Origin: Saccharolobus islandicus REY15A
Lineage (GTDB): Archaea; Thermoproteota; Thermoprotei_A; Sulfolobales; Sulfolobaceae
Length of the DNA: 64,000 nucleotides
Assembly: GCF_000189555.1 (NCBI RefSeq)
Contig: NC_017276.1
Reading direction: 5' to 3' (one strand)
The translations under genes were made by a program, and so were the position numbers. Shown one piece after another: positions 1,781-33,472 of this stretch; position 1 is the first letter of the stretch, and each line of letters begins with the position of its first letter. The notes under the pieces are model-generated. The model was given only the letters and a program-made list of their open reading frames with translations, ran no database searches and had not been told where the DNA came from.

Positions 1781-2851
1781 TTGTTATTCGATCTTCACCC
1801 TAAGCAGAATAGAGAAGAATTATTCGGAAGGGACTATGAAATAGAATATGTTATAAACCAGATACTCTCGGGAAACTGGGTTATAATAGGCGGTCAAAGA
1901 GAAATAGGTAAAACTAGCCTAATGAAAGTTGTTATTAACGAGCTTAGAAAAAAGTATGGTTTTAAAGGGATTTATGTAAGTTTAAGGGGAGTTAGAAGCT
2001 TAAATTCTTTATTAAATTTAATAATTTTAGAATTAAACAAGAGTAAAACTCAGATAAATTTAAGAGTTAGTATTAATTTTGTAGTAGGTTCTGCGGGAAT
2101 TGAGTTAAAGAGAAACGCTAAGGCAGCTAATAGTCTAATAGAATTATTTAATTCTATTCAAGAAGACTTTGTTATAGGAATTGATGAGGTTCAAGAAATA
2201 TCTAAGGCTAGTAGGCAATTTTTGGATGTTTTAGGTAACGTTTTTTCAACAAACCCTAAAGTCAAGTTCATCTTTACTGGCTCTTATGTGGGTGTTACAA
2301 AGACTCTAATTAACCCATCTGCTTCATCTCCCCTTCATGGTAGGCCACCAACCTTACTTAACCTTAAACCTTTTAATGAAAAGTTATCTAAGGGCTTTTT
2401 AAGGAAGGGAATGGAGGAACTTAACGTTAGTTTCGATAAAGAAGATGAAGTTGTAAAAAAGCTAGATGGAATAGTAGGCTGGTTAACACTATTCGGTAAT
2501 TTTTATGCTATAAGAAGGATGGACTTTAAAGAAGCCTTAAACTTAACGCTAGAAGAGGGAAAGAAGATAATGATAGAAGAATTTAATCATTTCTTAGAGA
2601 GCAAAACAAATAAGCAACTTTATCTTACAGTCATGGAAACTCTCAAGTTTGTAAACAGATGGAAAGACATAAAGAGAGGCGTTGAAATAAAGATGGGAAA
2701 AGTAGATGATAAGGAATTAAGCTTAGCTTTAGATGCTTTAATTAATAGTAATTTCGTAACTAAAGGAGAAAGGAGAGAGTATACAATCACAGATCCTATA
2801 TTAAAGGAGATCGATTTCGAAAAGCTTTCATCTCGAAATACGTTTATTTAA
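1781..2851 (+). CDS. Archaeal AAA-type ATPase (ATPase_2 family) with C-terminal wHTH
   Basis: MLFDLHPK...LFGR N-terminus; Walker A GQREIGKTS; Walker B IGIDEVQE; C-terminal YTITDPIL. Confidence 0.9.
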   Translation: MLFDLHPKQNREELFGRDYEIEYVINQILSGNWVIIGGQREIGKTSLMKVVINELRKKYGFKGIYVSLRGVRSLNSLLNLIILELNKSKTQINLRVSINFVVGSAGIELKRNAKAANSLIELFNSIQEDFVIGIDEVQEISKASRQFLDVLGNVFSTNPKVKFIFTGSYVGVTKTLINPSASSPLHGRPPTLLNLKPFNEKLSKGFLRKGMEELNVSFDKEDEVVKKLDGIVGWLTLFGNFYAIRRMDFKEALNLTLEEGKKIMIEEFNHFLESKTNKQLYLTVMETLKFVNRWKDIKRGVEIKMGKVDDKELSLALDALINSNFVTKGERREYTITDPILKEIDFEKLSSRNTFI

Positions 2852-3166
2852 GTTAAGATGCGCTTAAACTCTATTTAGCTTATTTTTCTAAACTAGGGAC
2901 TACTTCAAAATAATGAAAGCCTTATCAATTCTAAGATTAACTCAGTTTTGTATAATCATAATGATAAAATCTCTTTTTATTGGTAATCTTAATAAAGTGT
3001 TTAGAAAACAATTATAACTTTAATAATGAAACTTGACACTTCTGATCAAAGAATAATCACGTTTTTGTCTTTCTCTAAATAGTAGTAAATCTGATAGTTT
3101 TCTAGCTTTTTAATGGTAGCGATTTTAAACGGAAAAAAGGCTAATGATTTTTCGAAAACACTAACG

Positions 3167-3494: not shown

Positions 3495-4019
3495 ATGCCA
3501 ATTATAGTCAGGAAGGTTCATAAAAAGGCTGATGGTAGCACTATTTGGATAAGAGTAGGAGAATCACCCCCAGTAATAAAAGATGGAAATGTAATTGATG
3601 GTGGGTTTTTTATAAGAATCGGTGACGATAAAAGTGATAAAATAATTAGATTATCTGACCAAGAAGCTTTAGATATAGCATATAGGATAATAGAGGCTTA
3701 TAGGAGGCATGTTAGGATTTTCACCAAACTGGACGAGCTTTCATATGAACAGTATAAGAAAAGTAAGGAAGTTGTAAAAGATGAAGAAGAGGATGAAGAA
3801 GAAATTGAAAAGATAGAAGAGAAAAGGAATTTAACTCCGGACAAAATTGAGGCTGAATTGATAGATTATTTAACAGCTGCAGGAGGAGAAACAACCTTAG
3901 ATAAGGTTAGAGAAGATTTAGGAGAAGAATATGCTGCATACTTAAGAACGATGAAAAATAAGGGAATAATAATTGAGGGAACCAGAGTTAAATTAGGTAA
4001 AAACTTTAAAAATACTTAG
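3495..4019 (+). CDS. Hypothetical protein (beta-rich N-domain, acidic linker, C-terminal wHTH-like)
   Basis: 174-aa ORF with ATG and upstream AT-rich promoter; EEEDEEE linker. Confidence 0.75.
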   Translation: MPIIVRKVHKKADGSTIWIRVGESPPVIKDGNVIDGGFFIRIGDDKSDKIIRLSDQEALDIAYRIIEAYRRHVRIFTKLDELSYEQYKKSKEVVKDEEEDEEEIEKIEEKRNLTPDKIEAELIDYLTAAGGETTLDKVREDLGEEYAAYLRTMKNKGIIIEGTRVKLGKNFKNT

Positions 4020-4273
4020 ACGATGAGAGTTTCTTCTCATAAAGTCATCTTATTTTTGAAAAGTGTGTAATATATAAGATATTGACTATTGAATAAACAT
4101 TTATATGGAGAATTATAAAAATTTCATTTTGTCGATAGAAATTATTAAGCTATCTGTTATATGTTTGTTTATTACTTAGTGCTAGGGATCGCACTAGTAA
4201 TTCCATAAAGTTCTTATTCGTTTGGATATCATAAAATAAGAAGTAATAATACAAAAACTTACTGGAAGTACTA

Positions 4274-4342
4274 ATGGTTGTTTCACCCGTTAATCCTAAC
4301 GAGTCGCTACACTGCTCACTGAGGCATGTTAGGTTCAAGAGG
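4274..4342 (+). mobile_element. IS1-family ISC796-like transposase C-terminal fragment
   Basis: VVSPVNPNESLHCSLR...RFKR matches the recalled ISC796 C-terminus. Confidence 0.65.
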
Positions 4343-4995
4343 CACTACGTACACGCCTCTAATAGACCTGGGGGAATCGAGAATCTATGGATGTCAATCA
4401 TGTGTTTCTATATATTCTTTGTTGTCATAATACCTTGTTTTCTTTGCATAGTATTAAGTGTTTCGGCCCTAGGGTAATTTGGTTACAACCTCCTACACGG
4501 GGTTTGATCCCCTTAGAGCTTTTGGGCTTATGTTGTTTTTCCCCTTACTTGTTTATTTGTTTTTCTCTTGTAATACTTTGGCTTTTTCGTTCTCTAGTTT
4601 TGTGTGAATTCCCCGTAGGAGGAGAGCTCTACAACCTAGAATATACTCCCTTGGTAATTGAGGAGATCAAAATCTTGGCTAAAAACCTTCTGAGATTCAA
4701 GAGAGGTTAGGAGGATGATTGAGGGGCAAGTTCCTCAAGATCACGTTTTGTTAACGATACCAAGTGTTGGGAGGCTTGCAGCTGGTATTATTATTGGTAT
4801 TGTTGGTAATGTTAAGCGTTTTCCTAGGCCAGAGTCCAAGGATTGTTTGGAGTGTTTGGTATAATAATAGGCCTTATCAGCCTAAATAGGAGATCCCTCC
4901 CCCGAATCTCCACGTGGGTTGAAAGGACTCACGTGGCAATGTTAGCTAATATTATGCTTGAAGTTTGACCGAAAGGTTTATTATTGAACGCCCCC
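4343..4995 (+). mobile_element. Degenerate IS110-family (ISC1190-like) element with right end
   Basis: Fragments VLLTIPSVGRLAAGIIIGIVGNVKRFPRPES and SVWYNNRPYQPK*, then a 3' noncoding end with hairpin 4910-4936. Confidence 0.7.
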
Positions 4996-5624
4996 TTTTC
5001 TGTAATTCTATTGTAATCATCTTGTGGGATTATTGAAGTTATTATTTTAGCTCCTTATTCTTGAGTGTGGACAACAATTTCGTTCATTTGAAATTTAGTT
5101 AAAATTTCCTTAAAGTTGTATCACTTAAACTCTCTGATTCACGATAAAACTTTTGAACATGGTTAAAATTACAATATTATATGTTATTAACTAACAAATC
5201 TTGTGGTGAATTTAAAATAAATTTATACTTTATATAATTTATACTGAATTAAAAAATTGTTGTCCACACTCTTATTCTTTGAGGTTAAAACAGCAGCAAC
5301 GCTCATACTCTTCCTTCCTCCGGCTATATCCAAATAATCACCTCACTCAATTGTTTTTCGATAAATTCTCTAACTCCTTAAGTCATCCTCAGTGTAAATA
5401 TCTTCAATATCAAGTGGATGTTCACTAATTTCTACTTTAGGAAATTTGTCTTGAATACAACATACAAACATAAGTCTTAGCATTTTCCATGCCTTCTTTG
5501 CTTCTGCATTAGATGTAGTTACTACTCTCACTTCATCAACGTTCTCTCCCTTTCTTACTAGGTAAGGAAAAGACTCTATTGCTCTCCATGGTGATGTACC
5601 TAAAGTAGCTACTAGTTTAACCAT
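4996..5624 (-). pseudogene. crn1: CRISPR ring nuclease Crn1 (Sso2081-like CARF), frameshifted, MITE-interrupted, C-terminally truncated
   Basis: MVKLVATLGTSP...VVTTSNAE...MFVCCIQDKFPKVEISEHPLDIEDIY; shifted frames give DYLDIAGGRKSMSVAA and, past the MITE, KIITSIIPQDDYN. Confidence 0.85.
5063..5271. mobile_element. 209-bp MITE with 18-bp TIRs and 8-bp TSD
   Basis: GAGTGTGGACAACAATTT at 5063-5080 and its reverse complement at 5254-5271; TTATTCTT duplicated at 5055-5062 and 5272-5279. Confidence 0.9.
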
Positions 5625-5657
5625 GTTATGAATTAAAATTTAATTAAATATTTACTT

Positions 5658-6161
5658 TTACTGTTTTTTACCTCTACCTCTGAGGAATAGTACTAAACCA
5701 ACTAGCAACACGATTACACCGATAATAGCTAGAAAGAAACCAAGGCCAGTATATAATGCAACGTTTACCAATGAAGACGCTAATTCTTGACTTAAAACGT
5801 ATTTCACTGAAATCGGAGTAGTGAGGTTATTTACCATTATAGTATCGTATTTAGGACTTAATAACGCTATTACATATCCCTTTTCTGCAATTTGTGGTAC
5901 TGATTGGTTTGTCCCATTTATTTCTTGTAATATCTTTAACACTTGTCCAGAGCTCGTATTGTACAGCAATATAGACAACTTAGTGGGGACACCTAAATCT
6001 TGTGATGTCCCCGGTTGTAAAGTAGTTGGAGTTGCTGTACTTATTGAGTTAATCACTTTAATGAGTCCAGATGATGCTAAATATCCTCCAATAAAGAACA
6101 GTGCAATGCCAACTATTAGTATTATTACCCCTACTATCAGAACTGTTTTACCTATAGCCAT
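5658..6161 (-). CDS. Membrane protein (N- and C-terminal TM helices)
   Basis: 167 aa; hydrophobic termini around a soluble loop. Confidence 0.75.
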   Translation of the reverse strand: MAIGKTVLIVGVIILIVGIALFFIGGYLASSGLIKVINSISTATPTTLQPGTSQDLGVPTKLSILLYNTSSGQVLKILQEINGTNQSVPQIAEKGYVIALLSPKYDTIMVNNLTTPISVKYVLSQELASSLVNVALYTGLGFFLAIIGVIVLLVGLVLFLRGRGKKQ

Positions 6162-6202
6162 AATTTAAAAAGTTAAAGGAAACTATTAAGTCTTTTCAAA
6201 AG

Positions 6203-7132
6203 TTATATCACGTCTAAAGGATTAGTGGACACGAACTCGATATTCTTTATAACGTATTTGCTAGCACTTACACTACCGAAACTCTTTAGCTCCTTATGAA
6301 CCTCGAATATAACTATCGAAGGGTCACCTAATTGATATAAGCTACCAGGATTTATTGCAATAGTATCACCTATTTTATCCATTGAGGTACTTTCATGAAC
6401 GTGACCGTGGAGTGAAATAAGCGGTTTGAATTCGGTAATTAAATCAAGTACTGCTTTTGAACCAACATGAGATTTCCTTAAACCAACCTTTGCGTTATCC
6501 AATTTAGTGTTTAAAGGAGGCATGTGAAAGTTCATAATTAATCTTTCCTTATCAGCATCCTTAAGTAGTGATTTACCCTTTATGTATAATTCAGAGTCTG
6601 GGATTTCCCTATATGAATTTCCTATTGGAGAACCATAACCTAATGAGACTATCTGAATTTCCTCCAGATTTATTATGTTTTCATTGATCGGTTTACCCCC
6701 ATAATTCTTAAGAATAGACTCAAGTTGTAGAATATCACCATGTGCTGAAGACCAAAATACCCTTTCTAAACGAAACACTTCATCTGCTATTTTAACCCAT
6801 CTTGACATTTACTCAGTTACTTTTTCACTAATTACTTTCTCCAATTTACTCTTATCGCTCTTTATATCCTCAATTACCTCCTTCTTATCTATTACTATAT
6901 ATTTCCCAGACCTTAACGCATCTTCATTAAGGTTATTCAAATTAACCTTCTTCCCGTTTAGAAAATACTTTCCTCCAACGTCCTCTACAAACATTATCTC
7001 TTTAGCCATCAATCCCCCACTTACGATGAGAAAGTCGACCTTCCTAGCTTTTGCAATATTTAGTGACCTCTTAAATGAGTACTCTGACCCATGAACATCG
7101 GTAAGGAATCCTATCTTAAATTTAAAGACCAT
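6203..7132 (-). pseudogene. Calcineurin-like metallophosphoesterase split by an in-frame stop
   Basis: LTDVHG in the N-part, LHGHVHE and INPGS in the C-part; in-frame TAA at 6809-6811 directly before ATG 6808. Confidence 0.75.
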
Positions 7133-7261
7133 CTTATCTTAAATTTGCAATTACAAATTAAAAAATTAATTAGTCCTTTTTCTCCTTCTTTTCCATTACT
7201 TCCAGCAAGTAAACCCACGCCAAAAAACAAGGATCCACTTGCTGTTTTTTCTTTCCCTCAC

Positions 7262-8053
7262 TCACTTTGAAACCCTCCTTAGGAAGTTTTTAACTCTTTC
7301 CCATGCGTCTTCAGAGGCCTCTTTATTGTATGAACGTCCCCTATCGTTAAAGAACGCGTGATAAGCTCCGGGATAAATTTTGAGCTCTAAATCCTTCTTA
7401 TACTTTATTACAGCGGAAATTAGATCTGGTAACCCAGCATCTATGGGTGGATCCTCTCCAGCATATAGACCTAATATTGGCCCCTTTATTTTCTGAATTG
7501 TCTCCAATGGCTGGGGATTCCTGCCATAGAAAACTATTGTCCCATCTAATGGTACTTCAGTTGCTAACTGAAATGCTAAACCCCCACCCATACAGAAGCC
7601 CATACTAACTATCTTTTTAACACCTTGTGAGCTTACATACTCATAAGCCTTAATCGCGTCCTTTATCATCTGTTCCTCTGTTTTTTGTCTATTTAAAACC
7701 AACAACTCAGCTACTCTTTTGCCTTTTTCATCTAACGCTGACATTATTTGCTGATAAGAGTTTGGATCATTCCTCTTTTCTGGTGGTATGCTCCATACTT
7801 TCATCATTACGTTCTGGATGTTCTCCTGATTCAGAACGTCCTCATTCCTAGTGTATAATTGTGGAGCAAGTGCCATATAGCCCTCGTTTGCCAACCTTCT
7901 TGAAATGTCTTTTATATTGTCGTTAAGACCCCATATTTCATGTATTACTATCACTGCCAATTTAGGATTTTCTGGAGAAGCTAGGAAAGCCCTTATTTTA
8001 GCCCCCTCTGAATCGTAAAATATTTCCTTTTCCATATTTACCTTTACCGGCAA
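7262..8053 (-). CDS. Dienelactone hydrolase family protein
   Basis: IHEIWG, GFCMGG nucleophile motif, AYHAF. Confidence 0.92.
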   Translation of the reverse strand: MPVKVNMEKEIFYDSEGAKIRAFLASPENPKLAVIVIHEIWGLNDNIKDISRRLANEGYMALAPQLYTRNEDVLNQENIQNVMMKVWSIPPEKRNDPNSYQQIMSALDEKGKRVAELLVLNRQKTEEQMIKDAIKAYEYVSSQGVKKIVSMGFCMGGGLAFQLATEVPLDGTIVFYGRNPQPLETIQKIKGPILGLYAGEDPPIDAGLPDLISAVIKYKKDLELKIYPGAYHAFFNDRGRSYNKEASEDAWERVKNFLRRVSK

Positions 8054-8104
8054 ATGGTTTAAAAGTTAACTATCTATTTTTGTTAGATAAAAAAATAATT
8101 AACT

Positions 8105-9922
8105 TTAAATTAAGCCGGAATATAGCAACAAATCATAAACCATCGCATATGCATCATACGTTCCTGGACCAGTGACGTAGTTCCATCCATAATGGGCTGG
8201 GAATGGATTATTTCCACTAGTTATTGGTATCCAAGCTACCTTACCTACAAAATTACCTAGTGGAGATTCTATTATACCTTGATATGAAATGTGATACAAT
8301 GCAAAGTTGAGTGCACCTAATCTGGTACCCGCTAAGGAAACCATTGCAGCAGTCATAGGTGCTGCTCCACTAGTTCCATACCATACGAACAATTGACCGT
8401 TGAATACTAAAGGTAAACCGAAACCGAATTCTGGAATATTATAACCACCAGCAGATACGAATGCGATATCTGGATAAGTCCTAACTACAGTAGGAGTAAA
8501 TGGAATCAGTGAAGTTATCTCGTAACTTTGTGCTGGATAAACTACGCTATTACCTCCAGTACTATAATCCCAGCCACTTATTTCCACAATACTGCCATTA
8601 GGTGATGCATTAAGGAATACTCCACCAACTGACGTTACATAGGGATCTGACTCAGGGTACCATATAGTATTATATGTTCCTATATGGAAATTAGGAGGAG
8701 GATGATCACTTTCAAATCCCCAATCGCCAGAGGCCGCCAATACGGAAATTCCTTGCGCAGCAGCTTGCATCATTATATTATGAATCATATATAGCATTGC
8801 AGGGTAATAGGCTGCTAGGAAACTTTCTGGAACCGTTACAGAGATTGAAATAACATTAGGATTTATGTAGTTAACCATGTAATAGTACTCATAATAATAG
8901 TTTAGTAAATTGCCCACCAATTGAGGACCACCCACATAACCATTACTGAAGGCTATCGTAACGTTAGCTGCTGGTGCAAAGGCACCAGACCATTCTGCAT
9001 CTAACTCGTTTTCGCCAGATTGGCCTCCAGTTGTAACGTTACCGAAATATATAACGTTTAAATGACCAGTTCTAGGTATACCATAAAGTTGCCAGAACAG
9101 ATAGATATCTGATACATTTATAAAGGACTCAGGAACTCCCTCAATCGCGATATTACTACCGTTGCCGTTGTAACCGTGTTCATAGGCCATGGTAAAGTTG
9201 AAATACTTCCCTATTGTTATTGGTGAAATTATGGCCTTTGAAACTAGTCCACTTTGAGCTTTAACCATATCTAAATGCCACGCTTGTTTTATCACGTTAA
9301 CTACCTTGGGATCTAGACTATCTATCCCAACTACTCCTAATACGTATTTTCCAACGTTGTATGGTAATGAGGGAGTTACATTATTAGAGTAGTAGTAAAA
9401 TGGGCCAATATCCTTAATTCCTAGCAGACCAAACCAGTAGAGGTTCTTAAATGGATAGTAGTAGACGTTAATGTAAGTGTGAAATGCATTCTCTACGCTT
9501 CCCACGGTTCCATTAAATACTAGTATTAGACCATAATTGCCTAAAAATTCTAAGTTATAGGATTTTAGATAGCTTATTAGAGAATTCACATAGGATTTTG
9601 AAGGATAGTAGTACTCTCTAAACTGAGATGGGGTAAGCCATTTATGAAAGTGTGACGCTTGGAGGTAAGTTTCGTTAAGATATAATTGTAGAGAAGGTAA
9701 ACTAGTGAAATTTAAGAGAACTGCTATGTATAGTGGTTGGCTGGTGTTGAGAGGTTCTACAAATTCTGATCCTGGAACTATTGAGTATTGTGGAGAAGAT
9801 GTTTGTATATAGTAATATTGTTCTTGACTTTGCGCTATAGTTGCTAGGAAAGTCGTAGTACTTAGAACTAATATCAGAAGTAACATTAACAACCTTTTTA
9901 ACATTACATTTTCACTTTCCAT
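8105..9922 (-). CDS. Secreted S53 (sedolisin/kumamolisin-like) serine peptidase
   Basis: Signal peptide, pro-domain, ENELDAEW, AASGDWG, GTSGAAP. Confidence 0.9.
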   Translation of the reverse strand: MESENVMLKRLLMLLLILVLSTTTFLATIAQSQEQYYYIQTSSPQYSIVPGSEFVEPLNTSQPLYIAVLLNFTSLPSLQLYLNETYLQASHFHKWLTPSQFREYYYPSKSYVNSLISYLKSYNLEFLGNYGLILVFNGTVGSVENAFHTYINVYYYPFKNLYWFGLLGIKDIGPFYYYSNNVTPSLPYNVGKYVLGVVGIDSLDPKVVNVIKQAWHLDMVKAQSGLVSKAIISPITIGKYFNFTMAYEHGYNGNGSNIAIEGVPESFINVSDIYLFWQLYGIPRTGHLNVIYFGNVTTGGQSGENELDAEWSGAFAPAANVTIAFSNGYVGGPQLVGNLLNYYYEYYYMVNYINPNVISISVTVPESFLAAYYPAMLYMIHNIMMQAAAQGISVLAASGDWGFESDHPPPNFHIGTYNTIWYPESDPYVTSVGGVFLNASPNGSIVEISGWDYSTGGNSVVYPAQSYEITSLIPFTPTVVRTYPDIAFVSAGGYNIPEFGFGLPLVFNGQLFVWYGTSGAAPMTAAMVSLAGTRLGALNFALYHISYQGIIESPLGNFVGKVAWIPITSGNNPFPAHYGWNYVTGPGTYDAYAMVYDLLLYSGLI

Positions 9923-26865: not shown

Positions 26866-27672
26866 ATGGAATCAAGTATTCAAGCTTTAAAAAACATCAA
26901 AACAGGTTCACTATATTACTTTTTAGCAATAATTATAGCTTTGGTAACAGAAGTAGTTATATTTAGAGAAAAATCACTGGCTAATAGCTTTTTCGTCTTA
27001 ATATTTGAGTTAGTCGCATATGGCATATTGCTAATAGGATTTTCAAGAATGAGAACTGGATTTTTCCAGTTATCGAAAACGATAAATACATACATAGGCA
27101 CAACTGGAGTTAACATATTTATTATCGGCATAGTAGCATTGCTATTCGGTGCTATTCTACCGATTTTAATTTATATAGGAGGTTCCCTAGTATTTATAGG
27201 TGACGTAATGATAGGTTATACTATATATAAGATAGGACAGAGATTTCAAGTAAATACAGAGAAAATTGCAGGAATTCTGGTAATGATATCTATAACCTCT
27301 TTCATAGGTTACATAATTTCCTACTTTGCTTCTGATGAAGTTATGAGAAAAATGCTTCAAGCCCCTAGGGAAGAAAAGCTACTAATAGTTCCTAGCGATA
27401 AGAGTATAGGTTACGGAATTTTAAAAAGCAACGGAGATGCAAATGTAGTCGTTTATTCTAAAGAGTCCTCTGAAATAATCTCAGCCCAAATTATGGGCTA
27501 CAATTTCCAGACATTACAAATCAATCCCAAAACAGTTATGGCGGGAGAAAATAGAATATATATAAAATTTGCTCTATCTGGAGTAATGTTTGTTCCGGGA
27601 AATATTTATAATTTAGAGATATTACTTGCTAATAATGAAAAATTATTAGCCTCCTTAGTTTATGAATTATAA
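26866..27672 (+). CDS. DUF973-like membrane protein
   Basis: TM domain plus C-terminal GYGILKSNG...IISAQI domain, paralogous to 60611-61504. Confidence 0.75.
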   Translation: MESSIQALKNIKTGSLYYFLAIIIALVTEVVIFREKSLANSFFVLIFELVAYGILLIGFSRMRTGFFQLSKTINTYIGTTGVNIFIIGIVALLFGAILPILIYIGGSLVFIGDVMIGYTIYKIGQRFQVNTEKIAGILVMISITSFIGYIISYFASDEVMRKMLQAPREEKLLIVPSDKSIGYGILKSNGDANVVVYSKESSEIISAQIMGYNFQTLQINPKTVMAGENRIYIKFALSGVMFVPGNIYNLEILLANNEKLLASLVYEL

Positions 27673-27834
27673 TTGGATATATACACTATAAGATACTCCC
27701 GCCCAATTAGAATTAATTAATGTATAATAAATTTGTTGTGCACCTAATTGACTTGCAGAGATGGCACCGGTAGGCGTTGCCAACATTAGTAACGCTAGGG
27801 ATAGGGTTAGAAGGGCTAGAAGGGACTTCCTCAT
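27667..27834 (-). pseudogene. Truncated secreted protein with A291-type signal peptide (55 aa)
   Basis: MRKSLLALLTLSLALLMLATPTGA...NSNWAGVSYS; below the ORF-track cutoff; runs into the DUF973 stop. Confidence 0.75.
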
Positions 27835-27875
27835 TGTAAACGAAAAAGGAAAGTGTAACTTTATAAAGGGCCTAA
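27787..27875 (-). repeat. Promoter + signal-peptide module, copy A
   Basis: About 89 bp similar to 29545-29635, with 33 bp identical; contains TAGGCCCTTTATAAAG. Confidence 0.9.
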
Positions 27876-28204
27876 GAAGTTAAGTAGAAAAAGATAATGC
27901 CTAATATAAGTATACATACTATAAGGATAGTTATTATTGCAAAAGGCAATAAGCCCATCCACTTATATTTACTGATTTTTAGATAATCGAATAACTTAGT
28001 AAACCAATAAACTCCACTTAATAATAATAACTTCTCACCGGTTAAGGTTATCAGAACGTCTAAGAAACTTGTGTTAGATCCTATGAAAACATTGCGATCC
28101 ATATAAAGCACTCCAAGATAGGAAAAAAGAAGTGTTGCACCATAATCAAATAAGTTACCTAAAATGAAGATGAGCCATAAGACCTTTAGCCTATCCATCA
28201 ACAT
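27872..28204 (-). CDS. Small membrane protein, SSV-like context (ATG probably 28198)
   Basis: GNLFDYGATL motif and 3 TM segments; lies between a B129-like ORF and a toxin-type promoter. Confidence 0.7.
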   Translation of the reverse strand: MLMDRLKVLWLIFILGNLFDYGATLLFSYLGVLYMDRNVFIGSNTSFLDVLITLTGEKLLLLSGVYWFTKLFDYLKISKYKWMGLLPFAIITILIVCILILGIIFFYLTS

Positions 28205-28207
28205 TAC

Positions 28208-28393
28208 CTAACTAACGCAGATATTGTGTTTTTTGCAAACATGGTCTAGGGTTGAATCAGTGTTTCTAAACTCTTTCCCGCACACCGGGCAAGTCTTTGC
28301 GTGTTCCGTATAACGGATGTGTTGTTTCAGACTAACTGAAGAGCTGAAAGGAGTTAAACAGAGGGGGCAGACGTAAGGACCTATAATTCCCAC
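28208..28393 (-). pseudogene. SSV1 B129-like tandem C2H2 zinc fingers, C-terminal half only
   Basis: VCPLCLTPFSSSVSLKQHIRYTEH..CPVCGKEF...DHVCKKHNICVS is nearly the recalled B129 C-terminus. Confidence 0.85.
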
Positions 28394-28434
28394 TTCATTA
28401 AGCGATAAAAAACTGTATAAGTTTATAAAGGGCC

Positions 28435-28635
28435 TTAGTCTATTAAACGCAACAGTAAGTCTATTACTGCCTTACGAAATTTGGGGCTTAAGTACATTGC
28501 AATCCCTAAAGAGGCTAAGAAGATTGCCAAAGCAATTTCCGAGGCGTATTGAACATACCATGGGGGGGAAGGTGGGCATGCATAGATACTTGTTATTGCC
28601 GGAACTCCTATACTACTGTTATAAACGTGACACAT
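28435..28635 (-). CDS. C124-like small membrane protein (candidate immunity)
   Basis: PSPPWY followed by a TM helix and basic tail; own TTTATAAG promoter. Confidence 0.6.
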   Translation of the reverse strand: MCHVYNSSIGVPAITSIYACPPSPPWYVQYASEIALAIFLASLGIAMYLSPKFRKAVIDLLLRLID

Positions 28636-28668
28636 GGGTATACTAAAAAGAAATTAACTTATAAAAAA

Positions 28669-29592
28669 TTATGCATAATAATTTGTTGGGAATAGTGGGG
28701 TTTCGCTATATGCTAGTTGTACAGTTCCGGTAATTTGTGCACCACTACTTGATGTATAAGCGTTTGCTGAATAGGAGTTCCCATTACTTAACCAATGAAA
28801 TCCATAATATTGATTAGTGGTTTTTGTAATTGCAGTAAGTATTGTGGAACTTAAGTTATAACTATATGTAAAGACTTCTGCAGAAGTAGATGGAGTTCCA
28901 ATCACATTAAATTGTATATTACTAAACGTTTCATTAGGCACTGGATAGAAAAATACGTAGTATGTTTTAGTTAATTGCACATTTAAAGGAATCTCGCCTA
29001 TTATTAGTGCACTATAAGGCACAAAAACGTATTGTGAATCTATCACAGACTGTGAAAATCCGTTATTAGGATCGTAGAACTGTGCGGTGAGTCCGTTACT
29101 ATAACATAATGATATCTGTATCATAGTACCTGCAAATTTGCTAAGAGGAAATGTTTTGTTATAGAATGTTGCACCAAGTCCGCTTTGTACGAAACATACT
29201 GCAAGATTAAGATATTGCCCACTTGTATTTGCAATTAGAACAATAGCTGCTTGTACAAAATAGTTACCAGAATAATTACTTGCAGGATATGGTGAGAGAG
29301 CTACCCATATTGCATACTTATCGACATTACCGCCAATGAGACTTGTATTAAAGTATGAGGGAAGACTTGATGGGATAGGAATATTTATTTGGGCATACGT
29401 AAGTGGTTGTGGCTGATTGTTATTTTCAAAACCAAAAACATAGCCTTGAAAATTTAATGTAGTAGTAGAGCCTACGCTATTTATCGGTATCGGTGATGAT
29501 GGCGGTATTATTACTCTTGCAATTGTTGGAGTTATTAAAAACGATAGTAACGCTAGGGATAGGGTTAGAAGGGCTAGTAGGTACTTCCTCAT
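28669..29592 (-). CDS. Secreted SSV A291/B310-like toxin, intact (307 aa)
   Basis: MRKYLLALLTLSLALLSFLITP signal peptide; LSPYP, FAGT, NGFSQSV, FVPYSALIIG motifs shared with recalled SSV1 A291. Confidence 0.8.
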   Translation of the reverse strand: MRKYLLALLTLSLALLSFLITPTIARVIIPPSSPIPINSVGSTTTLNFQGYVFGFENNNQPQPLTYAQINIPIPSSLPSYFNTSLIGGNVDKYAIWVALSPYPASNYSGNYFVQAAIVLIANTSGQYLNLAVCFVQSGLGATFYNKTFPLSKFAGTMIQISLCYSNGLTAQFYDPNNGFSQSVIDSQYVFVPYSALIIGEIPLNVQLTKTYYVFFYPVPNETFSNIQFNVIGTPSTSAEVFTYSYNLSSTILTAITKTTNQYYGFHWLSNGNSYSANAYTSSSGAQITGTVQLAYSETPLFPTNYYA

Positions 29593-29635
29593 TGTAAGCA
29601 ATAAAAAGGAAAGTGCAACTTTATAAAGGGCCTAA
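29545..29635 (-). repeat. Promoter + signal-peptide module, copy B
   Basis: Near-identical to 27787-27875. Confidence 0.9.
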
Positions 29636-29823
29636 TCTATTTTCGTCTAATGAGAAGGAAGATTGTTAGTGCTAATAATGCAACACTGACGGCTAATATT
29701 TCAGGCCATAGGTTTGCATAGGAAGGCGGTGGGATATAACTGGTTTCGGTAATATTGCCCGCAAAAATAGGGCCTAGAAATGGTATCACAGAATTGTTTG
29801 TCTGTATTGCAGACATATTTGAT

Positions 29824-31113
29824 GTTGCAAATAAAGGGGGTTAAGGGGGCGGAAAGCCTCGCCAGCGGGGATGGATAGCCCACTTATATTTAAATACTTC
29901 TTTGCCAATTTTCTGTCGATGGCTAGAAGGGTTAAAGCGATCAGAGCTAGTGTTTCTATGAAGATCGCTCTATCTGAACCCCTCCTAGTCCTCGTTAATA
30001 ACTATGTAAAGGCACTCCGTTTCACCCTATTTTGGTTAAAGGAAAATGTCCCGAACCCAGACGAGAAGGGAGTGCTAGGAAAAGTCCACGAGGAGTTGTA
30101 TGAGAAGTTAAGGGAGGAGTATAATCTACCATCAAAGGTTGCCGAGGATTGTTATAGGGATGCCCTCTCAGTGTACAAGGGATGGTATAATAATCCTAGA
30201 AGAGGGCGTTTTCCTAGAGTATACAAACCCACTGTATGGCTAACTCCTAAGGCTAGCTATAATGTGGACTTTGAAGCAATGACTGTTAGGATTGCAAGTG
30301 TTGGTGAACTTCAAATTCTAGGTTATCCGCGAAATTTGAAGGAATACATGAGTTGGAGGATGAAGGAGGCTAGGTTAGTGGTTAAGGATGGGAAGGCTTT
30401 TCTAAAAGTGGTTTTTGAGAAACCGTTGGAGAATGTTGAGCCAAAGGAAAGTGTTGCTGTTGATATTAATATGAGTGAGATTGTTGTAGGAAAGGATGAT
30501 ATTAACTACGTTAGGATCTCAACTCGTTTGCATGAGGTTCATCATTGGAAGTCTTTAGCTGAAAGCCTACAAAAGAAGTATCCTAGAAGGTGGGGGAGAA
30601 TAAGAGGATCTTGTATAGGATTCGTTTTTTCAATCAAAGGGCTAGGAGGATTTTGCTAGGAAGGTTGGGAGGTGGGTTGTTGAAATTGCTGGGGATTTTG
30701 GTGCTAATGTTGTTAAGTTGGAGAGTCTCAAGAATCTTGTTAAGAATGTTGATAGACTGCCAAGAGAGTTTAGGGATAAATTCTACTTGATGCAGTATCG
30801 TAGGATTCAATATTGGATTGTTTGGCAGGCTAAGAAGCATGGTATTCTAGTTGAGTTTGTTAACCCTAGTTATTCTTCTGTTTCGTGTCCTAAGTGTGGT
30901 AAAAGGATGGAAGAAAAAGGATATCGTTGGTTTAGGTGTTCATGTGGTTATGAGAATGATAGGGATGTTATTGCAGTTATGAATTTAAATAGGAGGGGTC
31001 TCTGACCCTCTCGTCTGCCCACCATATGAGAGATGTAGTCCCGAATCGATGGTGGGAACGATGATCCCTCTGGAAGGGAAACCATCGCCCTTTCAGGGCG
31101 GTGAGAAAGTCAG
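29824..31113 (+). mobile_element. IS200/IS605-family tnpB-only element, 1290 bp
   Basis: Follows TTGAT; left-end GGGGGCGGAAAG...GGATAGCCC hairpin; right end GGGCGGTGAGAAAGTCAG. Confidence 0.85.
29919..31005 (+). pseudogene. tnpB: TnpB, frameshifted near 30590-30650
   Basis: VAVDIN; later [10 protein letters not shown]...[14 protein letters not shown] in another frame. Confidence 0.88.
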
Positions 31114-31323
31114 TGTATACGGAAACTTAGTTACTATAACCGTTGCGGAGTGGTCTATTGAGTGCAGATAAAACGATATGCCGAGAAGAACTAGGACTAT
31201 TATTAATGTAGCCACAATTAATTTCTTCATTAAAGGAAAAAGAAAGGTTACCTTTAAAAAGTTATTCACCAGTAGTACATGACTCCTTGAGCACCATTAC
31301 CGCTAAACGTCCCTATAAAGGGC

Positions 31324-31659
31324 TTAATTTTTGGGTCTAATCATTGGAATTATAAGTATACTTAAGCCTATTGCGATTATGAATGGCCATAAGTTAGCGT
31401 ACCATGGTGGGGGAACATGTATAGTAGGTGACGGGCCATAATAAAGCCCTTCTGGCGATCCTTCATATGGTTGTGCTATATATGTTGGATGGCCGATGGA
31501 ATAGAGCCATAAACCTATTCCCGCAAGGGCTATTGATAAAAATATGGTCGATAGGCTTCTTTTATTTGGTTTTACCCTTCCAAAATCCGGTGAGAAATAA
31601 AGAGTTAAGAAAGCCACGATTATTCCGGCAACGAAAATTAGAAGTGAAAGGAATTCCAT
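31324..31659 (-). CDS. C124-like membrane protein, intact (candidate immunity)
   Basis: GIGLWLYSI and PPPWYANLWP+TM, matching recalled SSV1 C124 GIWLKSI and PPWYANLWP. Confidence 0.78.
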   Translation of the reverse strand: MEFLSLLIFVAGIIVAFLTLYFSPDFGRVKPNKRSLSTIFLSIALAGIGLWLYSIGHPTYIAQPYEGSPEGLYYGPSPTIHVPPPWYANLWPFIIAIGLSILIIPMIRPKN

Positions 31660-31690
31660 GTTAAAAAAAAGTAGGTTAACTTAAAATATC

Positions 31691-31987
31691 TTATGGTGAG
31701 ATCCAATACAAAGCGTAATTTAGACCGTTTATTGTATTATAACTCTGGCCTTCAGATAGCTGAACATAGTTTAATCCATGAGCGCTATAATCTTGTGGAG
31801 TCCCTATACTGAAATACCATGCATACGGGTTATACCAATAGTTTATGAACACGTTATGGAATAATGTTAAACCGGATTCTGCATAATATGACGGTATAGG
31901 TGCCGTACCGCCTAAGTAGTCGGTTGCCGAAGACTGCCCCGCAACTGCATTTATAGGTTCCGGAGCTACATTAATCCACACTCCATC
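31691..31987 (-). pseudogene. C-terminal fragment of a secreted toxin-like protein
   Basis: Y/N/S-rich, no start or signal peptide; its stop is followed directly by the next SSV-type promoter. Confidence 0.6.
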
Positions 31988-32050
31988 CCAGAGACTAAAG
32001 GTAAAAGTTTAGAGGAAGCATCAAGAGAGGCAGAGTTAACAAAAGTTTAA
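31988..32050 (+). pseudogene. Orphan C-terminal tail of a sugar-porter MFS gene
   Basis: PETKGKSLEEASREAELTKV*; PETKG is the sugar-porter C-terminal motif. Confidence 0.65.
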
Positions 32051-32278: not shown

Positions 32279-32716
32279 GTGATTATCTTGAAAGGTAACA
32301 AAATCGATTATCTATTTCTCCTCTTTGGTCTCTTAGGATTAAGCACAATGATCTACTCTTACCTATCCTTTGGCTTAGACGTGATAAGTAGGAACAGTTG
32401 TACCATAAATTCCGTGATAAGTTGCTCATCAGTGGAAAACAGTATATACTCAACGTTTCTAGGGATAAAATTGTACTACTACGGAATGGCCTACTTTTCA
32501 GCCATAATAGTACTCTCATTACTTGTCGTAAAGGGGACAGTAAAGAACATAATTGGTTACGTAATTTCCCTACTGAGTATTATAGCCTCCATCATATCGG
32601 TTTATTTAATATATACTGAAATATTCTTGTTAGGACACATATGTATAGTATGTACTTTAGCACATGTCTCAATTTTCAGCGTTCTAATCCTCTCCGTGAT
32701 TAAGTTCAAGGTATGA
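32279..32716 (+). CDS. Vitamin K epoxide reductase (VKOR) family protein
   Basis: CTINSVISCSSV loop cysteines and the CIVC active site. Confidence 0.88.
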   Translation: MIILKGNKIDYLFLLFGLLGLSTMIYSYLSFGLDVISRNSCTINSVISCSSVENSIYSTFLGIKLYYYGMAYFSAIIVLSLLVVKGTVKNIIGYVISLLSIIASIISVYLIYTEIFLLGHICIVCTLAHVSIFSVLILSVIKFKV

Positions 32717-33472
32717 CTACTTTCAAAAGCGTTCACTTAGCCCTAATACCGCAACTTGAGGAGAGATTGAGTAAAATTGGAGACGTTAAAGTAATGAATG
32801 AAGTTAAAAAGCTTAAGTCGGCCCTACCAAATAACGTAGTTCTAGTTACAATGGATAAAAACCTGGCTTCAAACATTTCGTTAAACTTGAAAACAATAAC
32901 GCTAGAGAGTTACGAATAAACAATACGATACGGGTGAGTTCTTACATTGCTTAAGCTATTACCCTCAATACAGTTTCAATAAGGGTTTTAGAAAGGTCTT
33001 ATACCTGGAATTTGAGGGAAAAGACGTAGGTAAGATCAGTTATAACACTGAGGATTTACTAACAGTAAACGTGGAGACGTTAGATAGTGAACTACCCCGC
33101 CCTTACGGACAGGGCATCTCCACCTCACGATGGGGATTTCCTGCTTCTCAGAGCAACCTCGATCCCCCTTCACCCACAGCGGAGGTTCCATCGAACGGAA
33201 CCGTTCTGTAATGCCCCGTGTGGAAGAGGGGTTACGGAGGGTTGCTCTCCACAGGCGTAAGTTCCCCCAGTCCCAAGGGTACGGCCCAGCTCTTACAGCC
33301 GAGGCCTAAGAATTATCTATTTTTTGCAATAAAAAGGTTTCTATAAGGGGGCTATTCATCCCCTACCTTACGGAAGGGGACTTTCGCCCCCTTAACCCCT
33401 AATTAAGTTAAATACAATTACGCCAAAGTTTTAGAGGCTAAAAAGCATCATAAAACCCTCTTCATGAACTAG
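32713..33472 (+). pseudogene. Hypothetical gene, frameshifted near 32915 and interrupted by SMN1
   Basis: Frame VETLD-I-KYNYAK is restored on removing 33087-33407. Confidence 0.5.
33087..33407 (-). mobile_element. SMN1-type MITE, intact, 321 bp
   Basis: Minus strand: TTTAA target (33408-33412), CTTAATTAGGGG start, TAGTTCAC end. Confidence 0.95.

Follow-up and report, generated by a model that had tools for sequence, protein, structure and literature searches.

Three copies of a fusellovirus toxin-linked membrane gene in a chromosomal island of Saccharolobus islandicus REY15A, probable remnants of cassette turnover

Sulfolobus spindle-shaped viruses (SSVs) share a canonical gene order: a zinc-finger gene (B129/B158), an optional B111, the T3 promoter, a toxin gene, one or two small membrane genes, the T4 promoter, and the gene of the end filament protein VP4. 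The small membrane genes following the SSV toxin (A291, B310) include SSV1 C124, SSV9 C108, a type of 72 amino acids (aa) and a type of 89 aa. In the following, gene 2 stands for this fusellovirus small-membrane-protein family (SSV1 C124, SSV9 C108 and the 72-aa type; PHROG 9637 and 20661). For the self-protection of fusellovirus-toxin carriers, gene 2 is the obvious candidate, and two laboratories saw no effect of it. Here, we describe a virus-derived island in a stretch of 64,000 nucleotides, referred to as the window, from the chromosome of Saccharolobus islandicus REY15A (contig NC_017276.1), in which three copies of gene 2 accompany a single intact toxin gene.

DeWerff et al. 2021 (PMC8628083) reported that cells expressing only C108 were still inhibited by B310, that cells expressing only B310 were protected, and that infection of a lawn with SSV13 or SSV14 did not prevent its inhibition by B310. 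In a 2026 study of SSV1 (PMC13431529), a deletion of a291 and c124 behaved as the deletion of a291 alone, and an insertion in c124, with a291 intact, left halo formation unchanged. The c124 gene of SSV1 has its own promoter, pTx, and a constitutive transcript, Tx, and is expressed in the carrier state. Self-immunity through the toxin precursor, as in killer-yeast K28 and halocin C8, and as favoured for SSV toxins by DeWerff et al. (PMC8628083), accounts for the protection by B310 alone and for a dispensable gene 2, but gives gene 2 no role. A 2026 preprint has proposed the antisense RNA T3E as an alternative candidate antitoxin.

The locus also recalls a remnant described by Jaubert et al. 2013 (PMC3718332), the degenerate SSV-like sequence that every S. 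islandicus genome carries at tRNA-Thr[GGT] and that is likewise an ancient, decayed, mosaic fusellovirus fragment shared across strains. In contrast to that remnant, the island lies at a different locus, has no tRNA or int fragment, and holds only the toxin-cassette neighbourhood. No description of this island, which is bordered by genes for a DUF973 and a VKOR-family protein, was found in the literature searched.

We consider it on balance probable that the three copies were left over as cassettes turned over and decayed in a degenerating viral fragment, and that they are not a selected stockpile. An insertion sequence (IS) has inactivated one copy, another is an orphan next to a toxin stub, and the remaining one, next to the sole intact toxin, is a chimera. 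A preliminary description of this stretch had counted one intact toxin against three divergent C124-like genes, which is correct, and had interpreted the latter as immunity genes stockpiled against several SSV toxin types, a point to which we return below.

All three open reading frames (ORFs) were verified on the minus strand (Table 1; 31324-31659, the split gene at 31230-29637, and 28435-28635). They have a C-terminal module in common, in which PPPxY-x-x-(L/Y)(W/A)(P/S) precedes a membrane helix. In the six-frame translation of the window, the pattern PP.Y[AV][NQ][LY][WA][PS] has three matches, at 31410, 29729 and 28566, all on the minus strand and each directly preceding a hydrophobic helix and the end of the ORF, while shuffled sequence gave none (0/200 shuffles). 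Over its full length, the 111-aa protein matches PHROG 9637 (E 2.7e-60), a profile also matched by the C-terminal piece of the split gene (E 1.5e-7). The 66-aa protein matches another profile, PHROG 20661 (E 5.3e-26). When the C124/C108 group (PHROG 9637) and the 72-aa group (PHROG 20661) were compared profile to profile with hhalign, the PPPWY..P module with its transmembrane (TM) helix was aligned at 91% probability and E 1e-6. Because the alignment covers that module, the 66-aa gene is related to the other two only through it. The same comparison makes the earlier label "C124-like" right for all three genes, if it is understood as broadly as "Gene 2" in DeWerff et al. 2021 (PMC8628083). The C-terminal motif with helix seen in the preliminary description thus holds, as does the N-terminal segment that it noticed in two copies: GI(G/S)(L/F)(W/Y)L(Y/H)SI(G/D)H stands after the first long helix of both the 111-aa and the split protein. 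Searches of Pfam and NCBIfam gave no match for the three gene-2 proteins or for the intact toxin. An A/T-rich, TATA-like box precedes each gene-2 ATG by 25-30 nt and aligns with the intergenic regions of SSV1 and SSV9.

With its counterpart of the same length in SSV13, SSV14 and SSV17 ("Gene 2/3", PMC8628083), the 111-aa protein shares 97% identity, and with SSV9 C108 80%; its three-helix layout and its place after B310-type toxin sequence are the same as theirs. Unlike in SSV9, SSV13, SSV14 and SSV17, however, the upstream toxin is a stub of 100 codons, the gene is chromosomal without a surrounding virus, and the next gene is another gene 2 and not VP4. The split gene, with its ATG at 31230, is in its N-terminal part 71% identical to residues 1-35 of the 106-aa, toxin-following gene 2 of ASV1, and its C-terminus is 47% identical to that of SSV1 C124. 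Its 3' part is colinear with an intact 102-aa gene of strain M.16.4. As it comes after another gene 2, it resembles the second copies in SSV13 and SSVRH. The 66-aa protein is chimeric: its last 43 residues share 95% identity with the 72-aa protein encoded after the toxin in viruses of the MK054215 group, and its N-terminus is unrelated. The toxin sequence adjoining upstream is a stub for the 111-aa gene and the intact toxin for the 66-aa gene. With SSV1 C124, copies in the island share the N-terminal helix with G-L-G-I-W-L-K-S-I-D, the C-terminal PPWYANLWPE with TM helix and basic tail, and the place after an A291-family toxin. In contrast to C124, the ectodomains are unrelated, the split copy is disrupted, and the toxin-adjacent 66-aa copy is a short single-pass protein and not of the C124 hairpin type.

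The split of the middle copy, which had already been suspected, is due to an IS of 1,287 bp. The gene is intact at 102 codons in M.16.4 and M.14.25, and the IS is absent from both, so its boundaries could be set by comparison with these strains. Since the IS interrupts it, this copy is a pseudogene in REY15A, and the same split occurs in LAL14/1 (P0016). The tnpB of the IS is frameshifted into 29871-30659 (262 aa) and 30718-31005 (95 aa). The DNA of the IS is 73-74% identical to elements annotated as IS605 OrfB in Acidianus two-tailed viruses. A terminal hairpin (CGCCCTTTCAGGGCG) lies at its 31090 end.

Decay is not limited to this copy. In L.S.2.15, L.D.8.5, Y.N.15.51, Y.G.57.14, HVE10/4 and S. 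solfataricus P2, a frameshift shortens the array's first gene to 92-95 aa, so that the motif and the last helix are lost. With one copy split by an IS here and in LAL14/1, and with frameshifted alleles in many strains, the orphan copies do not behave as genes kept by host selection. The ratio of nonsynonymous to synonymous polymorphism (pN/pS) between chromosomal and viral alleles rests on few changes and is no lower for the gene-2 copies than for the dead toxin stub. It is uninformative, because the changes are too few and the dead stub scores as constrained as the gene-2 copies.

The single intact toxin belongs to the A291 family. It is 36% identical to SSV1 A291 (E 2e-14), 50% to the toxins of the MK054215 group, and 54% to a metagenomic 315-aa toxin (tox315). 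Its AlphaFold2 model (pLDDT 74, pTM 0.74) is a beta-sandwich with jelly-roll matches, which include glutamic peptidases, 1,3-1,4-glucanase and galectins and are to be read at the fold level only. The top structural matches are acid-active glutamic peptidases (2ifr, 1s2b, neprosin), ahead of the glucanase reported for A291, with TM-scores of 0.33-0.47 for all of these matches. An alignment of six toxin sequences has no invariant Glu; its invariant polar residues include Q171, D174 and Q292.

Two further toxin sequences are stubs, each near one end of the island. The C-terminal stub has an ORF of 96 codons (31981-31691), corresponds to the last third of PHROG 15623 (a 310-aa protein), and is 90-95% identical to the toxin C-termini of SSV9 and SSV14. 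The N-terminal stub is 94% identical to residues 1-52 of the SSV2 toxin. A single circular SSV, opened inside its toxin gene, was considered as the source of the island ends and rejected, as the stubs are of different types (B310 and SSV2).

Within the window, SSV-like DNA is limited to 27679-32005 (about 4.3 kb), all of it from the neighbourhood between the zinc-finger gene and VP4, and PHROG profiles assign every ORF of the island to fusellovirus families. Neither a tRNA nor an integrase gene was found in the 64 kb window. A fusellovirus provirus integrated in a tRNA gene is therefore ruled out, given also that only about 4.3 kb are SSV-like.

Table 1. Features of the island and of its host borders, with positions in the window
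Feature	Position	Strand	Evidence
Host flank, DUF973 membrane protein, conserved right border	26866..27672	+	Pfam DUF973 E 7e-74; borders the island in 8 S. islandicus genomes
Toxin stub N, signal peptide and ~30 mature residues of an SSV2-type toxin (ORF 27667-27834, 55 aa)	27679..27834	-	PHROG 11028 positions 1-52/301, E 4.5e-22
T3-type promoter core GCCCTTTATA, copy 1/4	27862..27871	-	
SSV9 B111 homologue, multi-pass membrane protein (110 aa)	27872..28204	-	97% identity to SSV9 B111; PHROG 8567 E 8.5e-45
B129/B158-type C2H2 zinc-finger gene, C-terminal half (61-aa fragment), one side of the scar	28208..28378	-	Pfam B129_C2H2-zf E 9e-16
T4-type promoter (core 28424-28433) and first five VP4 codons (ATGAAGTGGGAATTATAG, 28398-28381), other side of the scar	28381..28433	-	
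Gene-2 copy 3, 66 aa, single-pass, predicted N-terminus out, PPSPPWYVQYAS, TM helix and basic tail	28435..28635	-	PHROG 20661, tblastn, hhalign, topology
Sole intact toxin, 307 aa from ATG (310-aa ORF from 29601), signal peptide, A291 family, beta-sandwich fold	28669..29592	-	
T3-type promoter core, copy 3/4, ahead of the intact toxin	29622..29631	-	
Gene-2 copy 2, 3' part (PPPSYANLWPE, TM helix, RRK)	29637..29826	-	PHROG 9637
IS200/IS605-family, tnpB-only element inside gene-2 copy 2 (1,287 bp)	29827..31113	+	Pfam Cas12f1-like TNB E 1e-18
Gene-2 copy 2, 5' part (MKKLIVATLIIVLVLLGISFYLHSIDH...), own TTTTTAAA box ahead	31114..31230	-	Sequence, promoter alignment
Shortened T4-type promoter core, copy 4/4; SSV14 homology stops here	31314..31323	-	
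Gene-2 copy 1, 111 aa, three TM helices, orphan beside toxin stub	31324..31659	-	PHROG 9637
Toxin stub C, last ~100 codons of a B310-type toxin, without signal peptide or promoter	31691..32005	-	PHROG 15623 positions 216-310, E 1.5e-59
Host flank, VKOR-family protein, conserved left border	32279..32716	+	Pfam VKOR E 4e-21; identical protein borders the island in 8 genomes

The DNA of the island is a mosaic. From 31990 to 31314, it is 97% identical to SSV14 over the C-terminal third of the toxin and the 111-aa gene, until the match breaks off within the T4 promoter. From 31314 to 29651, there is no viral DNA match except for the IS. The stretch 29635-29479 holds a T3 promoter and signal peptide, with 85-88% identity to SSV1 and MK054215, and 28566-28383 matches MK054215 at 91% identity over the C-terminal half of the 72-aa gene, the T4 promoter and the first five VP4 codons (the part from the T4 promoter through the VP4 start has the same identity). 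From 28378 on follow half of a zinc-finger gene, B111, a T3 promoter and a toxin N-terminus, with 94% identity to SSV9, SSV13 and SSV14, in all of which B111 lies upstream of the toxin. The zinc-finger fragment, at whose first base (28378) the DNA homology begins, is 90-91% identical to residues 68-125 of the SSV13 and SSV14 protein. The breakpoints of this mosaic coincide with promoters.

At the junction between the VP4 and zinc-finger sequences, about 13 kb of the viral genome are missing. As the same junction peptide ("LNEVGIIGPYVCPLC") is found in M.14.25, M.16.4, L.S.2.15 and L.D.8.5, this loss is old and common to the strains. The promoters themselves are repeated: the core GCCCTTTATA occurs four times in the window, against 0.19 expected, always on the minus strand and always in the island. 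In the viruses, T3 (toxin) and T4 (VP4) have nearly the same sequence of about 45 nt (TTAGGCCCTTTATAAAGT...TCGCTT..AATGA), so that each cassette of toxin and gene 2 is bracketed by direct repeats. Such repeats around the viral cassette are a ready substrate for excision and exchange.

A history compatible with this map would start from an old insertion of SSV DNA, which lost about 13 kb and kept the VP4-zinc-finger scar. Later infecting SSVs may then have recombined with the relic at the near-identical repeats of T3/T4 promoter and signal peptide that flank the toxin-gene 2 cassettes. Cassettes would have been added or swapped in this way, and old gene-2 copies and toxin stubs would have remained.

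The island is found, with the same left border and different contents, in M.14.25, M.16.4, L.S.2.15, L.D.8.5 and CP046616. In M.14.25 (locus L017, 5086-6000, minus strand), a toxin of 304 aa, near-identical to the viral toxin of MK054215, and a 72-aa gene follow B111. In M.16.4 (locus L024, CP001402.1, 5720-6592, minus strand), the toxin has 290 aa, is 81% identical to A291, and is followed by a 109-aa gene of the C124 type. Both are full-length A291-family toxins with signal peptide. The islands of L.S.2.15 and L.D.8.5 are without an intact toxin, and in CP046616 most of the island is gone. M.16.4 and L.S.2.15 (L020) have about 2 kb of extra sequence beside DUF973 (positions about 2840-3075 and 3744-4783), which contains inverted copies of the B310-type toxin C-terminus (73% identity) and of the junction of 72-aa gene, T4 and VP4-zinc finger (89-91%). 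The island has therefore also undergone inverted duplication.

A similar relic exists in another Sulfolobales chromosome, that of Sulfurisphaera ohwakuensis (CP045484.1). There, locus L122 (8344-10369) holds a B111-like gene, a frameshifted toxin of the SSV2/13 type (164 and 118 aa), and two tandem intact gene-2 paralogues of 86 and 122 aa. A second locus, L120 (7013-15390), holds more gene-2 copies and a fused 273-aa ORF with two anchor motifs.

We surveyed the family in 13 IMG/VR loci, 77 metagenome loci, 3 genome loci and phage records. A profile search, as had been suggested for the motif, found a small family limited to Sulfolobales, with 52 clusters among 5.8e9 proteins and 40 representatives among 1.84e9 proteins, none of them named. 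Wherever gene 2 was found in the survey, it stands directly 3' of a signal-peptide toxin of 280-370 aa, in three genome layouts: the canonical one, that of ASV1 with two tandem cassettes, and that of contig L039 with the cassette downstream of VP4. In the betafusellovirus ASV1 (5028-8356), the tandem toxin-gene 2 cassettes have a zinc-finger gene between them and are followed by a third secreted protein; multi-cassette arrays thus exist in free viruses too. Additional gene-2 copies after one toxin occur in SSV13, SSVRH and S. ohwakuensis. At least five viral contigs (L038, L074, L075, L079 and L113), on the other hand, have the toxin and then VP4 directly, with no gene 2.

Across ten toxin clusters, the type of gene 2 corresponds nearly one-to-one to the toxin cluster. 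Exceptions are the identical 111-aa protein beside unrelated toxins in SSV13 and in SSV14/17, contig L039, and the recombinant MK054219. Physical linkage alone could yield such co-variation. Fine co-variation between a toxin patch and the ectodomain of the 72-aa type was considered as a sign of contact and dropped: six of seven genomes are linked, MK054219 is recombinant, and the sample is too small to argue contact. In the deposited records of MK054213, MK054219, SSV12 and MK054210, the toxin is split into two or three short coding sequences. As the sequence holds an uninterrupted ORF for a 302-aa signal-peptide toxin, these records under-annotate the toxin.

The C-terminal anchor is conserved across alpha- and betafuselloviruses, and the ectodomain, often rich in N-x-S/T sequons, is not. 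One pair illustrates the difference: the chromosomal toxin of M.16.4 is 81% identical to SSV1 A291, and the gene-2 proteins that come after them, C109 and C124, are 47% identical overall, with nearly all identities within the two anchors. From the charge distribution and the positive-inside rule, the variable segment and PPPxY are predicted to lie outside the cell and the basic tail inside. Gene 2 is accordingly predicted to be a small membrane protein with an outward N-terminus or loop, which carries a short, fast-evolving ectodomain on a conserved anchor, one helix, and a basic cytoplasmic tail. Two known uses of such C-termini were considered and set aside. As a sorting signal (PEF-CTERM, PGF-CTERM, LPXTG), the best match was PEF-CTERM with 13.2 bits against a cut-off of 23, obtained for the split gene only and spanning just the helix and tail. 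A viral PPxY late-budding domain was rejected because PPWY or PPSY, while present, is predicted on the outer face, directly before the last helix.

Because the anchor on the outer face is conserved, the ectodomain is hypervariable and probably glycosylated, and the gene strictly follows the toxin, we tentatively infer that viral gene 2 is probably a toxin-linked accessory surface protein. For self-protection, it appears to be neither necessary nor sufficient, as far as the published tests and the distribution of the family suggest.

Gene 2 could be a functional accessory on the producer side, for example in toxin handling, tethering or partial self-protection, with its activity in the anchor, and the chromosomal paralogues of M.16.4, REY15A and S. 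solfataricus could serve as a back-up that complements viral knock-outs and hides their phenotypes. The strong conservation of the anchor in alpha- and betafuselloviruses, beside unrelated ectodomains, would fit, as would the fact that gene 2 remains beside the toxin even when the cassette moves. Furthermore, all published test hosts carry homologues, three in M.16.4, and P0022 in S. solfataricus, where it is present on 65 contigs. However, toxin-only viruses exist, and the toxin alone is secreted, active and self-protective (PMC8628083). We therefore hold a functional back-up to be doubtful as an explanation of the island.

The idea of the preliminary description, a poly-immunity set in which each gene-2 protein neutralises or binds its cognate toxin at the cell surface and the chromosome keeps orphans against several SSV toxin types, fares worse. 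It would be in line with the tracking of toxin type by gene-2 type (seen also in PMC8628083), with a variable ectodomain on a conserved anchor, with an orphan that adjoins a toxin stub with homology handles, with the extra copies found after one toxin in SSV13, SSVRH and S. ohwakuensis, and with the TATA-like box that each copy has retained. The experiments argue otherwise. A plasmid overexpressing C108 (pOE-C108) gave no protection against the cognate B310, which was protective alone (PMC8628083), and disruption of c124 with a291 intact was silent (PMC13431529). SSV13 and SSV14 both encode the 111-aa protein like the first copy in the window (97% identity), identical in the two viruses, and the lawns infected with them were killed by B310 all the same. 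The "uninfected", toxin-sensitive tester strains of the SSV toxin papers, which were killed by B310 and by SSV11 p29 and outcompeted by SSV17 carriers, derive from M.16.4. This strain is sensitive despite three intact gene-2 copies on its chromosome, one of which differs from SSV17 gene 2 at only 2/111 residues, both changes conservative. In addition, not every toxin-bearing virus carries gene 2, chromosomal alleles are frameshifted or IS-split in many strains, and the ectodomains of C124 and C109 have diverged far more than their partner toxins. With C108 giving no protection, a silent c124 disruption, a sensitive M.16.4, toxin-only viruses and decayed copies, stockpiled immunity is not borne out, and we regard the poly-immunity set as decidedly improbable. 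Stand-alone cognate immunity is just as unlikely; it keeps a low probability, and not zero, because the negative tests left C108 expression unverified and their hosts carry paralogues.

The likeness to polymorphic toxin systems, which had also been proposed, stands in part. As in the orphan toxin-immunity modules of contact-dependent inhibition (CDI; cdiA-CT/cdiI) and of Rhs, the island has toxin fragments beside small intact downstream genes, homology handles, and strain-variable content at a fixed locus, and its orphan and extra copies do lie beside toxin stubs with repeated handles. What does not stand is the keeping of immunity genes as a stockpile. Unlike in CDI and Rhs, the variable part is the whole toxin and not its C-terminal tip, promoters and signal peptides serve as handles, the cassettes come from an infecting virus, and immunity was tested in relatives of gene 2 and not found.

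In a related proposal, the island between DUF973 and VKOR would be an arsenal kept by the host and fed by infecting viruses, with the intact A291-family toxin domesticated and the orphan gene-2 copies cross-protecting or complementing viral gene 2; to this we give little credence. Least probable is superinfection exclusion or surface masking, in which a carrier-state surface protein blocks related viruses and is linked to the toxin only via the shared, recombining accessory region upstream of the VP4 receptor-binding filament: the small membrane protein is expressed in the carrier state, its gene usually lies directly upstream of VP4, and its ectodomain evolves fast, but the same VP4 N-terminus pairs with three gene-2 types (SSV14, SSV13, MK054215), and in ASV1 cassette 1 and contig L039 it is the toxin that gene 2 accompanies, not VP4. 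As the type of gene 2 does not track VP4, this alternative is weaker than a toxin-linked surface accessory.

Several points weigh against turnover and decay as the origin of the three copies. The tight association of toxin and gene 2 resembles that of toxin-immunity pairs, and orphans beside toxin stubs are what retention of immunity predicts. Production and membrane insertion of C108 are unverified in the negative expression tests, and chromosomal paralogues in all test hosts could mask phenotypes. The pN/pS ratios, with too few changes, cannot separate selection from neutrality. Recombination is deduced from breakpoints and was not observed, and since the outer stubs are of different types (B310, SSV2), the ends of the island are not accounted for by one simple insertion.

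Outside the island, the interval 33036-33350 is G+C-rich in an A+T-rich genome, has overlapping ORFs on both strands, and resembles a structured RNA gene. An Rfam scan of the region and of this interval gave nothing above threshold, the best match for the interval being RAGATH-18 with 23.7 bits against 44.9.

New for the family are the anchor motif (PPPxY..P and helix) with its hypervariable ectodomain, and a strain-variable chromosomal island that holds gene-2 copies and intact A291-family toxins in REY15A, M.16.4 and M.14.25, laboratory strains in wide use. A third new point is the resulting confound: the published negative tests were run in hosts already carrying paralogues. The island itself offers a natural panel of alleles. 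If the copies are relics of cassette turnover, as we favour, the locus is mainly a caution against inferring immunity from gene pairing. If the island copies instead complement viral gene 2, this would account for the silent knock-outs and over-expression tests in S. solfataricus and M.16.4, and for the unequal toxin sensitivity of S. islandicus strains.

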